From IMG/VR virus record IMGVR_UViG_3300020195_000009, positions 186,001 to 250,000 of that record: a DNA stretch of 64,000 nucleotides. One strand, 5' to 3'. A program made the translations under genes and the position numbers. Shown here one piece after another: positions 3,900 through 16,066 of this stretch; the stretch's first letter is position 1, and each line of letters opens with the position of its first letter. The notes under the pieces were generated by a model, which made no database searches, was not told the DNA's origin, and saw only the letters and a list, made by a program, of their open reading frames with translations.

Positions 3900-4027
3900 T
3901 GCCGACAAGTTGTAGAGCTAAGATGGTTTATCTAGGCACCAGCCACGCCCCCCATTGTGGACGTACAGGGAGTTGAACCCTGGTCGATCGATTCATAGTC
4001 GATGTAATCCTAGCAAGTCATCCGGCA
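3900..4027 (-). ncRNA. Y-RNA-like module #1 (cargo: anticodon-like hairpin plus T arm)
   Basis: UGCCGGAUG...AGGAUUACA...CUUGUCGGCA terminal stem; internal aucga-CUAUGAA-ucgau and caggg-UUCAACU-cccug. Confidence 0.65.
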
Positions 4028-4030
4028 CGG

Positions 4031-4103
4031 TACCCCTGGTAGGAATCGAACCCACGTTGCTGGTTCCGAAGACCAGTGCCTAATTCCGCTAGGCTACAGG
4101 GGC
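4031..4103 (-). tRNA. tRNA-Arg(UCG)
   Basis: ctggt-ct-TCG-ga-accag. Confidence 0.92.
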
Positions 4104-4138
4104 AAAATTGAGAACTCTTTGATGCGAAGGGCGAGGGC

Positions 4139-4456
4139 ATGAAGACCCCCATCCTTGTTACCCTCTCGATTCTCGCGGTTGCTGCTTGCGGCGAGGCGAA
4201 GGCACCTGAGAACACCATCAACGACGGTGGCAGCGCAGAAGCTTCCACTGAAGCCCCGAAGGCAGCGGCTCCGGTTGCGGACGCAGCTTCGGCTCCGTTG
4301 GCCCCAGACCCGCCCAAGGCGGCGGCTCCGGTTGCGGCAGCTTCAACAGCCGTTGTAAGCGCTACAGCTCCAGTTGATGCCGGACCGCCCGTGAAGGCGG
4401 AAGGTGGTGCTGCAAAGCCCGCACCCAAGGCCGACGCTGGCGCACCGAAGAAGTGA
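4139..4456 (+). CDS. Ala/Pro-rich lipoprotein
   Basis: Lipobox LAVAAC, low-complexity body with DAG motifs. Confidence 0.8.
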   Translation: MKTPILVTLSILAVAACGEAKAPENTINDGGSAEASTEAPKAAAPVADAASAPLAPDPPKAAAPVAAASTAVVSATAPVDAGPPVKAEGGAAKPAPKADAGAPKK

Positions 4457-4517
4457 AGAAGTGAGCGTCAAACGCCCATCATGGAATTGAAAGACTCTTT
4501 GATGGGCGCTTTTGGTC

Positions 4518-4679
4518 ATGAGAACCAAGATGTATTTTGTTCTCGTGATCATCGCCGGCTGCAAGTCGACAGCGCTCCCGGAGGAGCCTGCCTTCGTTGA
4601 AGTCGTAACGAAGTTCCGAGCTGACGCAGGCGAAACCCCTCCCTTGGTTCTCGCGACGCAAGATCCGCTCAGACGGTAG
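4518..4679 (+). CDS. small lipoprotein
   Basis: MRTKMYFVLVIIAGC...(53 aa); shares upstream AATTGA..ACTCTTTGATG motif with the 4139 gene. Confidence 0.6.
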   Translation: MRTKMYFVLVIIAGCKSTALPEEPAFVEVVTKFRADAGETPPLVLATQDPLRR

Positions 4680-4751
4680 CGTCCCCGGTTGGAATCGAAC
4701 CAACGTAACAGGCTTCGGAAACCTGGGCCTCATCCGCTAGGCTACGGGGAC
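4680..4751 (-). tRNA. tRNA-Arg(CCG)
   Basis: caggt-tt-CCG-aa-gcctg. Confidence 0.9.
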
Positions 4752-4774
4752 ATGGGGGCCGTGAGGCCCCTCCC

Positions 4775-4963
4775 TCAGAGAACATCCCAGAGGATGCTTT
4801 TAGGGTGAACGATCTGGAGATCGTCGAACCGATCCTTGACCATGAGGGTCTTGGCTCTGGCTCTCTCTTTGCTCCAGTAGCTCTGTTTCCACCAGTGAAG
4901 CGAGTACCTCCAACGGGGTCGGAAGTTCTTTACGTGGTTCTTTCGTCTGTGGTTCTTGTGCAT
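4775..4963 (-). CDS. small basic hypothetical protein
   Basis: SD GGAGG upstream, hairpin downstream. Confidence 0.65.
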   Translation of the reverse strand: MHKNHRRKNHVKNFRPRWRYSLHWWKQSYWSKERARAKTLMVKDRFDDLQIVHPKSILWDVL

Positions 4964-5047
4964 GGGTACCTCCCGGAAGCTAATCCGGTGGCACCCACCT
5001 CTCGTCGTATCGCAGCATTTGTAGTCCTTTCAGAGTTGAAGGATACG

Positions 5048-5122
5048 TGGCCTCTCTGCCAAGAGTCGAACTTGGGCAACGGGTTTCGTAGACCCGTGTG
5101 TGGAATCCGCCACAACAGAGAG
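5048..5122 (-). tRNA. tRNA-Arg(ACG)
   Basis: cgggt-ct-ACG-aa-acccg, CCA encoded. Confidence 0.85.
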
Positions 5123-5127
5123 ATTAG

Positions 5128-5200
5128 CGTGCCCGGCAGGACTCGAACCTGCATGAACCAGCTCCGCAAGCTGGTGCCTGATCCGTTAGGCTACGGGCAC
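5128..5200 (-). tRNA. tRNA-Arg(GCG)
   Basis: ccagc-tt-GCG-ga-gctgg. Confidence 0.88.
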
Positions 5201-5235
5201 ATTGTCTTTGATTTCAGAGGCCTTGCTTTACCTCT

Positions 5236-5298
5236 TGGCGTCCCCAACGCGAATCGAACGCGTGTTCCCACCTTGAGAGGGTAGTGTCCTGGGGGGAC
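5236..5298 (-). pseudogene. tRNA-Glu(CUC) lacking most of the D arm
   Basis: Acceptor, ctacc-ct-CTC-aa-ggtgg, T arm and CCA intact; only caggac remains of the D region. Confidence 0.75.
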
Positions 5299-5336
5299 AG
5301 AAATACAAAAGCTCCTATGGGCCATCTTCGATCAAG

Positions 5337-5525
5337 ATGGCCAGAAAATTCAACATCACGTACGTCGAAGCTGACGGCCAGTGGATGGCCAGTATCTACA
5401 CGGTTCCGGGTTGTCACGCAGAGGGAACAACCAAGGATGAGGCACGAGCGAACATCAAAAGGTCGCTCTTGTACTTCTTTGACGACGTGGACGTAGAGTT
5501 TACGGAAGAGTCCTTGAGAGGGTGA
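5337..5525 (+). CDS. HicB-like antitoxin (solo)
   Basis: DGQWMAS...PGCHAEGTTKDEARANIK HicB N-terminal signature. Confidence 0.8.
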   Translation: MARKFNITYVEADGQWMASIYTVPGCHAEGTTKDEARANIKRSLLYFFDDVDVEFTEESLRG

Positions 5526-5528
5526 GCT

Positions 5529-14453: not shown

Positions 14454-14721
14454 ATAATTCGTTTTTGAAACCTCTCAATTAAGATGTCCGCAGTAGCCGC
14501 TCTTCAATGCAAAGTCTGCGGTTGGTGGTGGTTTTTTCATGACAACCACCCTAACTCACCGTTCACTTGTAAATGCTGCCTTGAGGGTCGGTCGTTGTGG
14601 GACGACGTTATCGAATGCCCACCTTCGAGCATCCGCCTCAAGACAACCAAGTAATTGGAGCGGACTCCGGCTGTCGGCGGTACCTGGACCGACGGGCTAT
14701 CAACCCTGCCTTCATCCGCAG

Positions 14722-14793
14722 CGGGATCGAGGGGAATCGAACCCCCCTCGTCGGCGTGACAAGCCGATCGCCTCACCAGATGCGTACGACCCC
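14722..14793 (-). tRNA. tRNA-Asp(GUC)
   Basis: tcggc-tt-GTC-ac-gccga. Confidence 0.9.
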
Positions 14794-14797
14794 ATTT

Positions 14798-14944
14798 GAC
14801 ACCGACAAGAAAATGCTGAGACGTTTTCAGCACGGAGATGGTTCCGCCTTTGGAGGACGGCCACAACCGTAGCCCCCCAGGAAGCTCGGAACGAGGGCTC
14901 CGGGATTCATGGCGGGGGTTGTAGTCCCGACGACATTCGGTGTC
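14798..14944 (-). ncRNA. Y-RNA-like module #7 (contains a Trp-like anticodon hairpin)
   Basis: GACACCGAAUG-UCGUCGGGACUACA...ccguc-CUCCAAA-ggcgg...CGUCUC...CUUGUCGGUGUC. Confidence 0.72.
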
Positions 14945-15022
14945 CGCGTCCGGGAAAACCTCTTGGTGATCGATCGCCAGGGCTCCAATGACCCGAGGAC
15001 CCGCCAAGACCCGAACCGCTAG

Positions 15023-15095
15023 TTGGCCGTGGGAGAATTGAACTCCCGACCTCACGCTTATCAGGCGTGCGCTCTAACCACTGAGCTATCGGCCA
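15023..15095 (-). tRNA. tRNA-Ile(GAU)
   Basis: cacgc-ct-GAT-aa-gcgtg. Confidence 0.93.
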
Positions 15096-15099
15096 ATGA

Positions 15100-15252
15100 T
15101 GCGACGACAAGGTGACGGAGGAGACGGCCAGCATAGGAGCCCTTCTAAGTGCCGGTCTTGAAGGCTTGCGTCTTCAAGGCGGGATCTGCCCCCGCAAAGC
15201 TCCGGGCCTGGCTTGCCCTTGGTCGATGTAGTCCCTTCCTTCATTCGTCGCA
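15100..15252 (-). ncRNA. Y-RNA-like module #8 (degenerate permuted tRNA cargo)
   Basis: UGCGACGAAUG-AAGGAAGGGACUACA...gcggg-GGCAGAU-cccgc, cuugaag/cuucaag...CGUCUC...CUUGUCGUCGCA. Confidence 0.72.
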
Positions 15253-15253
15253 G

Positions 15254-15318
15254 TGCTTGAGGTTGGAATCGAACCAACTACGCACGGTGCTTCAAACCGT
15301 CGCTCTAGCTACTCAAGC
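15254..15318 (-). tRNA. tRNA-Phe(GAA) with D-loop deletion
   Basis: acggt-tt-GAA-gc-accgt; D region reduced to tagctagagc. Confidence 0.7.
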
Positions 15319-15461
15319 ATGGTGGGTCGTGTTCGCCTCTTGGTGCGTCGGCTTACCGATCGTCCAAGAGGCTCGGGCCTTCCCTTTGCCCGATGCGAGA
15401 GCTACCCCGGCTGCGTTGCCTTTACCGCCCGCAACTTCCGGTTCTACTATTCGCGAGTTTG

Positions 15462-15533
15462 TGACCCCAGCCGGATTTGAACCGAGCGTGAACCCCTTGA
15501 AAGGGGGCTATCCTGCCTTTAGATGATGGGGCC
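15462..15533 (-). tRNA. tRNA-Glu(UUC)
   Basis: gcccc-ct-TTC-aa-ggggt. Confidence 0.88.
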
Positions 15534-15795
15534 TAACATATAACCGACGAAAAATACGTCTTTGACTCGCATTCCCTCTGTTCTTGGACTTGTAAGTGGG
15601 GGTTTGAGCGTGACAATTAGGGCAAAGCAGACGTAAATTCTCACTAGTGTTGGAATCCGAATTTCCGTCTACATGGTCAAGCTCGATGGGGATTGGATGA
15701 TCACACCACATGGTTAATCCACACCCCTCGCAGGATCTCCCACGCTCACGAATCAGAATCCTCTTCCGTGTGGGATCGCTTTGAGCCAAGTCCAA
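15508..15795 (-). CDS. HNH endonuclease (N-terminal zinc finger apparently frameshifted upstream)
   Basis: CEGCG, IELDHVDGNS, ENLRLLCPNCHAQT; upstream frame reads RCEACG...FCSPC. Confidence 0.82.
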   Translation of the reverse strand: MDLAQSDPTRKRILIRERGRSCEGCGLTMWCDHPIPIELDHVDGNSDSNTSENLRLLCPNCHAQTPTYKSKNRGNASQRRIFRRLYVRPHHLKAG

Positions 15796-15892
15796 ACTCC
15801 ACCGCCTAGCCTCTCGGCACGGCGAACAAAACTTGAGCTTAGACCCTATTTTTTGGCCACACGCTTCACACCGACCACCAAGCCTCTCACGG

Positions 15893-15912
15893 TACCGTTA
15901 GGCGATGGGGCC
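15893..15912 (-). pseudogene. 5' fragment of a tRNA-Glu
   Basis: ggccccatcgcctaacggta resembles the 5' end of tRNA-Glu at 15533; directly upstream of the HNH gene. Confidence 0.55.
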
Positions 15913-15921
15913 GTTCCTTTG

Positions 15922-15993
15922 TGACCCTGGCGGGAGTTGAACCCAGCGTCCCCAGATTGAGAATCTGGTTGCCTACCGTTAGCAGACAGGGCC
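15922..15993 (-). tRNA. tRNA-Glu(CUC)
   Basis: ccaga-tt-CTC-aa-tctgg. Confidence 0.88.
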
Positions 15994-16000
15994 GTTGAAA

Positions 16001-16066
16001 TGGGTCAACAAGGGGACGGACGAGACGTCATGAAATGGTATGTAGTCCCGTCCAGCATTTGACCCA
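16001..16066 (-). ncRNA. Y-RNA-like module #9 (minimal)
   Basis: UGGGUCAAAUG-CUGGACGGGACUACA...CGUCUCGUCC...CUUGUUGACCCA. Confidence 0.7.

Follow-up and report, generated by a model that had tools for sequence, protein, structure and literature searches.

Nine putative YrlA/YrlB-family Y RNAs embedded in the tRNA array of a large metagenomic phage

What are the nine short minus-strand elements that lie between tRNA genes on a large phage contig, and with which protein would they work? The stretch analyzed here, referred to as the window, is 64,000 nucleotides (nt) long and corresponds to positions 186,004–250,003 of the 286,005-bp metagenomic phage contig Ga0163150_10000022 (IMGVR_UViG_3300020195_000009). 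Coordinates are counted from its left edge, window position 1, and L-numbers denote loci fetched for comparison. An original prediction described the elements, here e1 to e9, as modular Y RNAs in which one conserved stem carries interchangeable tRNA-derived cargo; all nine are present, with coordinates within 1–3 nt of those first proposed. Bacterial Y RNAs bind the Ro60 protein Rsr and tether PNPase, and the YrlA type has a tRNA-like domain (PMC4201824). Comparative sequence evidence supports the identification of the elements as Y RNAs well, and we consider it likely that they are phage-encoded members of the YrlA/YrlB family acting by the mechanism proposed below. The new features are a large set interleaved with tRNAs, new insert classes and the lack of an intact local Ro60, in a set that Rfam thresholds miss.

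A common core in the nine elements

Eight of the nine elements share a single architecture. A first helix (stem 1) leads into a 5′ loop, a second helix (stem 2) and the tetranucleotide UACA, after which come the insert, the return strand of stem 2, a 3′ loop and the return strand of stem 1. A consensus common to all nine had been proposed; it fits these eight, the helices of e6 being weakened. Stem 1 comprises 7 bp, of which 6–7 form in each of the eight elements even though all eight stem 1 sequences are distinct, and stem 2 comprises 8 bp, with 7–8 pairs formed and GGAC at its end (GGUC in e2, GGAU in e1). The 5′ loop (5–7 nt) starts with AUG, or AUA in e3, the 3′ loop (8–11 nt) ends with CUUG, and the insert measures 14–106 nt. 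The predicted covariation of the core is real: the inner pair of stem 1 is either G-C or A-U, and within stem 2 an A-U pair becomes U-A in e2 and a C-G pair becomes U-A in e1.

The motif AATG-N6-14-ACTACA has six matches against 0.24 expected (25-fold), every one of them in the 13.6–16.1 kb interval of the minus strand. A base-pairing descriptor, which involves no training, returns exactly the eight intact elements in the 64 kb. During its development, a looser version had given 198 matches versus 126 in shuffled sequence and was tightened to 53 versus 5. Covariance models add no further element, either within the window or over the 8.6 kb past its left edge. Because stem 2 or the 5′ half is common to e4, e5 and e6, the sequences point to an origin of these three by local duplication.

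Two covariance models were built. The first, R1, was trained on the nine elements (MAFFT alignment A1) and used as a detector only; in A1, stem 2 of e4, e6 and e7 has its 3′ strand out of register, so R1 is imperfect. The second, R2, is a core model from 23 short forms, e2 and e9 among them, taken from 18 sources (the window and other phages) and aligned with MAFFT. RNAalifold independently recovers both helices from these 23 sequences. Compensatory changes occur in 14 of the 15 pairs, and 95% of cells pair, versus 69% in shuffles. The covariation score is 0.678; shuffled alignments give 0.177, none of 500 attaining the observed value, and slid registers give no more than 0.15. The short forms in this set were picked by a structure-aware model and are to that extent biased toward paired candidates.

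Relation to known Y RNAs and linkage to Ro60

The module common to the nine elements matches the consensus frame of Rfam YrlA (RF02553): a stem, gaAUGC, a second stem, CUAC, ACUUGUC and the stem return. With this model (gathering score 69), e3 aligns over the full length, 1–114, at 43.5 bits (E 5.8e-7, or 5e-9 when searched alone), and e2 gives a weak match at 19 bits (E 6.8). Against YrlB (RF02565, gathering score 97), e9 scores 35.9 bits (E 3e-4); the remaining elements have no YrlA match at E up to 10. In the comparison with Rfam that had been envisaged, all scores lie below the gathering thresholds. In addition, e5, e6 and e8 (GACGAAUG) have an exact copy of the 5′ motif GNCGAAN0-1G, the likely Rsr contact (Chen et al., 2014; PMC4201824); one substitution separates e7 (ACCGAAUG), e2 and e9 (GUCAAAUG) and e4 from this motif, and e1 and e3 diverge further. 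The consensus of the phage short forms is CGAAUGC.

Linkage to Ro60 genes was approached from the protein and from the RNA. The protein-first set started from an alignment of six phage Ro60 proteins and comprises 80 phage Ro60 loci with 10-kb flanks, collected with no RNA reference. In these loci all 142 R1 matches at E ≤ 0.01 lie on the Ro60 strand, as do 177 of 178 descriptor matches, which are spread over 59 of the 80 loci (9 matches in the shuffled control); this agrees with the linkage to TROVE genes suggested for related phages. The RNA-first set was drawn with a 17-base core pattern and comprises at least 120 bacterial loci with a fetched span of 8 kb or less, from Myxococcota, Planctomycetota, Acidobacteriota, Sphingomonadales, Burkholderiales, Verrucomicrobiota and others. 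Among the bacterial loci listed, 95 have a Ro60 gene within 8 kb, and in those 95 every descriptor match (205 of 205) is co-oriented with it. In the cultured Myxococcus phage Mx1, two elements (OR576727.2, ∼45,169–45,297 and ∼45,521–45,624) lie between tRNA genes, ∼11 kb upstream of an intact 549-amino-acid (aa) TROVE/vWA Ro60 on the same strand; one of the two scores 32 bits with Rfam YrlA. In the window itself, a Ro60 remnant lies on the strand of the elements, 26–40 kb from them. Outside the neighborhood of a co-oriented Ro60 gene, the core hardly ever occurs. Since this linkage emerges from two independent ascertainments, and the core agrees with the YrlA/YrlB core in both consensus and 5′ motif, the proposed Y RNA identity is well supported.

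YrlA, a Y RNA of bacteria and mycobacteriophages that has a tRNA-like domain (PMC4201824), shares its core with the elements and its permuted arms with e3. Relatives lie beside Ro60 in the same orientation. YrlA is found within 4 kb of Ro60, whereas the nine elements occupy a tRNA array distant from a remnant, and e4-type inserts add a class II variable arm that is not described in the literature searched. The long hairpins e2 and e9 have their 5′ motif and small apical loop in common with YrlB, whose Rfam model is built from Salmonella sequences only, and with Deinococcus radiodurans Yrn2. Yrl1 and Yrl2 of Thermus phage phiLo are also phage Y RNAs beside a phage Ro60, with binding to Ro60 and host PNPase shown in vitro (PMC12135203), but they number only two and have a different core, and the phiLo Ro60 is 24% identical to the Mx1-type protein. 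R2 finds no match in the Ro60 loci of phiLo and of Streptomyces phage Bmoc; because it is silent in both, the core appears to be specific to the clade of Mx1-type and proteobacterial-type Ro60. Metazoan Y RNAs (RF00019) follow a similar modular logic: Ro60 binds to a conserved terminal helix that contains an internal loop or bulge, other factors bind to a variable loop, and several paralogues occur per species. In contrast to the phage elements, they are single RNA polymerase III genes that do not lie between tRNAs, and there is no sequence-level match between the two.

Inserts, copy number and genomic setting

The cargo had been described as tRNA-derived. This is borne out for four of the seven long inserts, by a T arm in e1, e3 and e6 and through homologues in e4, but not for e5, e7 and e8, and e2 and e9 are plain hairpins (Table 1). 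Element e1, in which all pairs form (7/7 and 8/8), scores 59 bits with R1, whose training set includes it; its insert is 71% identical to the element L176:13784-13912. The full YrlA tRNA-like domain, comprising T arm, closed acceptor-like stem and D arm, is found in e3 only, and this insert resembles many phage elements. With R2, e2 and e9 score 55.3 and 65.5 bits, both being among its 23 training sequences, and e5, which lies outside that set, scores 36.6 bits (E 8e-9). The inserts of e5, e7 and e8 show no tRNA similarity over shuffled controls and have no homologue among the loci fetched. The 5′ half of e6 is the same as that of e4 over 21 nt; R2 matches e6 at 17.9 bits in its 5′ part only, and the element resembles the 3′ half of a tRNA with a score of 44 against a null maximum of 36.

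The insert of e4 comprises, in order, a variable-arm hairpin, a T-arm position, a closed acceptor and a D-arm position, all closed by a CCGG stem. The same subclass includes L077:7561-7715 and L054:1884-2050, and an alignment of these elements has compensatory changes in 12 of 41 pairs. Both homologues keep the T loop (UUCGAGU/UUCAAGU), and the D arm of the L077 element matches tRNA-Leu(caa) at 19 of 20 positions. In contrast, e4 itself is devoid of the T-loop consensus (UUCGAGU is replaced by AGUAACG) and of the D-loop GG, both of which the homologues keep. The T loop and D loop of a tRNA contact each other, and their joint loss in e4 may for this reason be a correlated change.

The prediction of an expanded, modular repertoire holds in that the set is modular and large, but multi-copy sets are not peculiar to this phage. 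A 14-base pattern from four elements was scanned over IMG/VR and the loci so obtained were searched with R1, which yielded many large phage contigs with several matches each. Up to nine descriptor copies occur within ±10 kb of a phage Ro60 (L172) and 6–7 in several other loci, and a 392-kb contig (L117 and L134) has at least nine R1 matches over more than 30 kb. On the 190-kb contig IMGVR_UViG_3300006056_000001, seven elements follow one another head to tail (L026:6308-7028, plus strand) at a spacing of 4–10 nt. This run begins 7 nt past an extended Ro60 open reading frame (ORF; 4712–6301), and since no tRNA lies between its elements, their release there would not depend on tRNA processing. 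The bacterial loci listed usually have 1–3 copies, and up to six. Nine copies are therefore near the top of the range and not unique. Published accounts credit a phage with one or two Y RNAs and a bacterium with "at least two"; no description of such arrays was found in the literature searched, which is itself no proof of absence. The 188 distinct elements from all loci comprise 89 plain hairpins, 47 with a canonical T arm (inserts mostly 75–95 nt) and 52 others (31–225 nt).

The closest relative, L104 (IMGVR_UViG_3300005830_000410), is 70–89% identical over window positions 14915–21596. Its homologue of e9, which carries a compensatory A-U to G-C change in stem 1, lies on the opposite side of tRNA-Met, and L104 has a further hairpin element (L104:806-869) that the window lacks. 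As both order and content differ, units of tRNA and Y RNA appear to have been shuffled between relatives. A search of GenBank phages returned no close relative and tRNA-sized matches only. In Mx1, the "hypothetical protein" WNM70101.1 (L120:7344-7466, OR576727.2 45524-45646) coincides almost exactly with the Y RNA-like element L120:7341-7444 and is probably a mis-annotation.

Within the array, the elements tightly abut tRNA ends. Six of the nine begin 0–3 nt after a tRNA (0 nt for e1, e2, e4 and e6, 1 nt for e5, 3 nt for e3), e8 begins 2 nt after a tRNA detected by Rfam only, and e7 and e9 begin 78 and 42 nt past the preceding tRNA. At the other end, eight elements stop 2–8 nt before the next tRNA, and e6 19 nt before it; e1, for example, lies between tRNA-Arg(tcg) and tRNA-Met, 2 nt from the latter. 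Of 189 elements in other loci, 57 follow the 3′ end of a tRNA, and 50 precede the 5′ end of one, at a distance of no more than 10 nt. No sigma-70-like minus-strand promoter and no excess of terminators are seen inside the array, in scans that were uninformative. From the placement against tRNAs we infer that the elements may be transcribed together with them into long precursors, from which the enzymes of tRNA processing would release them. RNase P cleavage at the next tRNA would leave a 3′ tail of 2–8 nt, and the 5′ end of each Y RNA would be set by tRNA 3′-end processing. YrlA of M. smegmatis is cut by RNase P (PMC4201824).

The GC content is ∼57%, and most tRNA genes in the array have no encoded CCA. 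A transfer-messenger RNA (tmRNA) closes the array; a tmRNA beside Y RNAs is also found in the related arrays of Mx1, L034, L077 and L092. The tRNA that ARAGORN did not call may be a shortened or unusual one. Three protein genes lie inside the array, all on the minus strand: a VanW-like gene (2856–3797), an orotidine monophosphate-decarboxylase-like gene (5526–6275) and a weak GmrSD_C-like match (7575–8201). Some long tRNA spacers have no explanation, for example 14370–14720, 15534–15920 and 17154–17407. Past the array, outside the window, follow an HNH endonuclease, a 529-aa vWA protein, RtcB and then a GroEL-like chaperonin, so that an rtcB gene lies just downstream of the array and on its strand. 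The 529-aa protein was considered as an intact Ro60 and rejected: it has a generic N-terminal vWA domain and no TROVE domain, and hhalign gives it a probability of 3.7%.

Table 1. Coordinates of the array, the nine elements and associated genes (window positions unless a locus is named)
Feature	Position	Strand	Description
tRNA array	576–17829	−	45 ARAGORN tRNA genes, one Rfam-only tRNA and tmRNA; nine elements embedded
tmRNA	576–925	−	Rfam 76.9 bits; no ARAGORN call
e1	3899–4028	−	T arm CAGGG-UUCAACU-CCCUG, closed 6-bp hairpin, short third hairpin; stem 2 closed by GGAU/AUC
e2	10258–10322	−	Short YrlB-like hairpin, 15-nt loop beyond UACA; stem 2 closed by GGUC/GAC
e3	12850–12983	−	Canonical YrlA type: T arm, closed acceptor-like hairpin (GCAA loop), D arm, permuted order
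e4	13560–13713	−	Permuted class II (tRNA-Leu-like) mimic; directly after tRNA-Leu(cag)
e5	13806–13908	−	54-nt insert, two hairpins, one with GCAA loop; stem 2 same as that of e4
e6	14117–14293	−	Divergent copy: T arm preceded by anticodon-loop-like CUCAUAA; CUUGUC kept; both core helices weak
e7	14799–14943	−	97-nt insert; 7/7 and 7/8 pairs
e8	15101–15251	−	101-nt insert: 5-bp/7-nt-loop hairpin at T-arm position (no UUCRA), closed 7-bp hairpin; 7/7 and 7/8 pairs
Rfam-only tRNA	15254–15318	−	65 nt, Rfam 47.7 bits, directly upstream of e8; no ARAGORN call
e9	16002–16065	−	Short YrlB-like hairpin
Ro60 pseudogene remnant	44010–44505	−	Two pieces in two reading frames
RtcB RNA ligase	L203:14742-16148 (+), 2.8–4.2 kb past left edge	Window −	PF01139, E 4e-86

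The Ro60 remnant that had been noticed at 44 kb is real, as matches to PF25045 (vWA_Ro60, E 2e-7) and to a phage Ro60 profile attest. Its C-terminal piece (44,010–44,393) corresponds to the vWA C terminus, profile positions 402–527 (E 1.4e-41), and is 40% identical to residues 423–549 of Mx1 Ro60; the best bacterial and phage Ro60 matches of the remnant are all 50–57% identical and thus single out no host. Just upstream, in another frame, lies a TROVE piece covering positions 178–215, a weak match at E 0.15. The first ∼177 residues and positions ∼216–401 are missing, and the space upstream is taken by an unrelated 237-aa gene. The remnant and its upstream neighbor were also used to search IMG/VR and a metagenome collection for syntenic relatives in which Ro60 is intact; nothing but the contig itself was retrieved.

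Elsewhere in the window, an amidohydrolase gene is flanked by two tRNA genes (53885–53962 and 55106–55182, both minus) whose anticodon, CUA, is that of an amber suppressor. These tRNA genes adjoin genes for an ADP-ribosylglycohydrolase (52728–53654) and a PTH2-type peptidyl-tRNA hydrolase (∼55185–55511, minus). Amber-codon recoding as the cause of the tRNA(CUA) pair or of the broken Ro60 was rejected; no sign of TAG recoding is seen within the window, where TAG is the stop of 14 of 52 long ORFs. A 371-aa protein (50584–51699, plus) is annotated as AcrVA2-like (PF26125) in the precomputed Pfam data, and our own Pfam scan at E ≤ 0.01 was empty.

Proposed role and rival explanations

We propose that the released RNAs would bind the Ro60 ring through the conserved core, and that the variable insert would set the target to which the ribonucleoprotein is tethered or for which it is gated, by analogy with the tether/gate model of bacterial Ro60, Y RNA and PNPase. 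The inserts here would offer one mimic each of a class I tRNA and a class II tRNA-Leu, besides plain hairpins and other folds. As the sole phage Ro60 seen is a remnant, the protein partner would most likely be host Rsr, or a phage copy elsewhere in the genome. Host Rsr is a credible partner, because bacterial Y RNAs have the same core and the identity between bacterial and phage Ro60 proteins reaches 73%. Together with the tRNAs, tmRNA, RtcB and peptidyl-tRNA hydrolase, the Y RNAs could form an island that sustains translation and RNA quality control during infection and plausibly counters host nucleases that damage tRNA. Among other phages, phiLo has a Ro60 to which its two Y RNAs and host PNPase bind (PMC12135203), the Ro60-like gp130 of phage Bas63, encoded beside tRNA genes, counters host defense (bioRxiv 10.1101/2024.10.10.617714), and phage Ro60 has been suggested to take part in RNA repair (PMC7824862).

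Several observations weigh against this proposal. None of the nine elements reaches the Rfam gathering scores. E-values from our own models are rough, with training sets that overlap the window elements, and both the IMG/VR and the bacterial loci were ascertained by an RNA pattern. In e6, stem 1 forms 5 of 7 pairs and stem 2 at most 6 of 8, without the GUC return strand, so that this copy is possibly divergent or decaying; in e7, the 3′ strand of stem 2 has a competing local hairpin. Precomputed Pfam annotation and the Ro60 profile show nothing Ro60-like besides the remnant in contig positions 158,415–285,656 (127 kb), so that the proposed partner is absent nearby. The anti-defense role is drawn from the gene neighborhood only.

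One explanation of the remnant is that the phage lost Ro60 and that the Y RNA genes are now unused relics, too young to have decayed. The reduction of Ro60 to two fragments with no intact copy in those 127 kb, the weakened helices of e6, and the absence from e4 of loop consensuses that its homologues keep are all in its favor. However, eight of the nine elements keep 6–7 of 7 and 7–8 of 8 pairs, each with its own stem sequence, and the compensatory change in the e9 homologue of L104 occurs in a region only ∼77% identical. The elements and bacterial Y RNAs have an identical core, so that a host Rsr could serve as partner, and the 127 kb searched are part of a 286,005-bp contig. We regard such relics as unlikely. 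A role independent of Ro60, with the elements acting as cis spacers or processing platforms for the tRNA array or as decoys for host proteins that bind or cleave tRNA, would account for their tight abutment to tRNA ends, for the tRNA-like inserts, including a tRNA-Leu mimic beside tRNA-Leu genes, and for the lack of an intact Ro60 nearby. A cis role nevertheless leaves the co-orientation with Ro60 unexplained (59 of 80 phage loci, 95 of at least 120 bacterial loci), and the L026 tandem run follows Ro60 without any tRNA inside. Moreover, the conserved part is the Ro60-type core and not the tRNA-like part, and plain hairpins make up half of all elements. This alternative also strikes us as unlikely.

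Chance similarity, or descent from degenerate tRNA pseudogenes, might be suspected in an array rich in tRNA-derived sequence, where R1 scores 17 bits over two tRNA-Leu genes. Against this stand the 25-fold enrichment of the motif on one strand only, and a core with no tRNA counterpart; covariation in 14 of 15 pairs and the strong Ro60 linkage effectively refute it. The reading of the elements as Y RNAs of the YrlA/YrlB family thus keeps our preference. A bolder version of it, which we hold to be unlikely though not far-fetched, is that they form an orphan set: with the phage's own Ro60 lost, the nine Y RNAs, freed from the tRNA precursor by tRNA processing, would either commandeer host Rsr or act without Ro60 as class-specific tRNA mimics (e.g., e4). 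Either way, host nucleases directed at tRNA, or quality-control enzymes, would be diverted during infection.

Y RNAs are thought to specialize the Ro60 ring by substrate, and studies in bacteria and phages have dealt with only one or two per organism. Large phages and many bacteria hold sets of Y RNAs in which an invariant core is joined to very different second modules, and the phage sets are interwoven with tRNA arrays beside RtcB, tmRNA and peptidyl-tRNA hydrolase. A simple core model detects members of the family below current Rfam thresholds. The resulting catalogue of natural "module swaps" bears on the tether/gate model, with Myxococcus phage Mx1 as a cultured entry point, and Y RNAs that persist without the phage's own Ro60 bear on whether phage Y RNAs use host Rsr.

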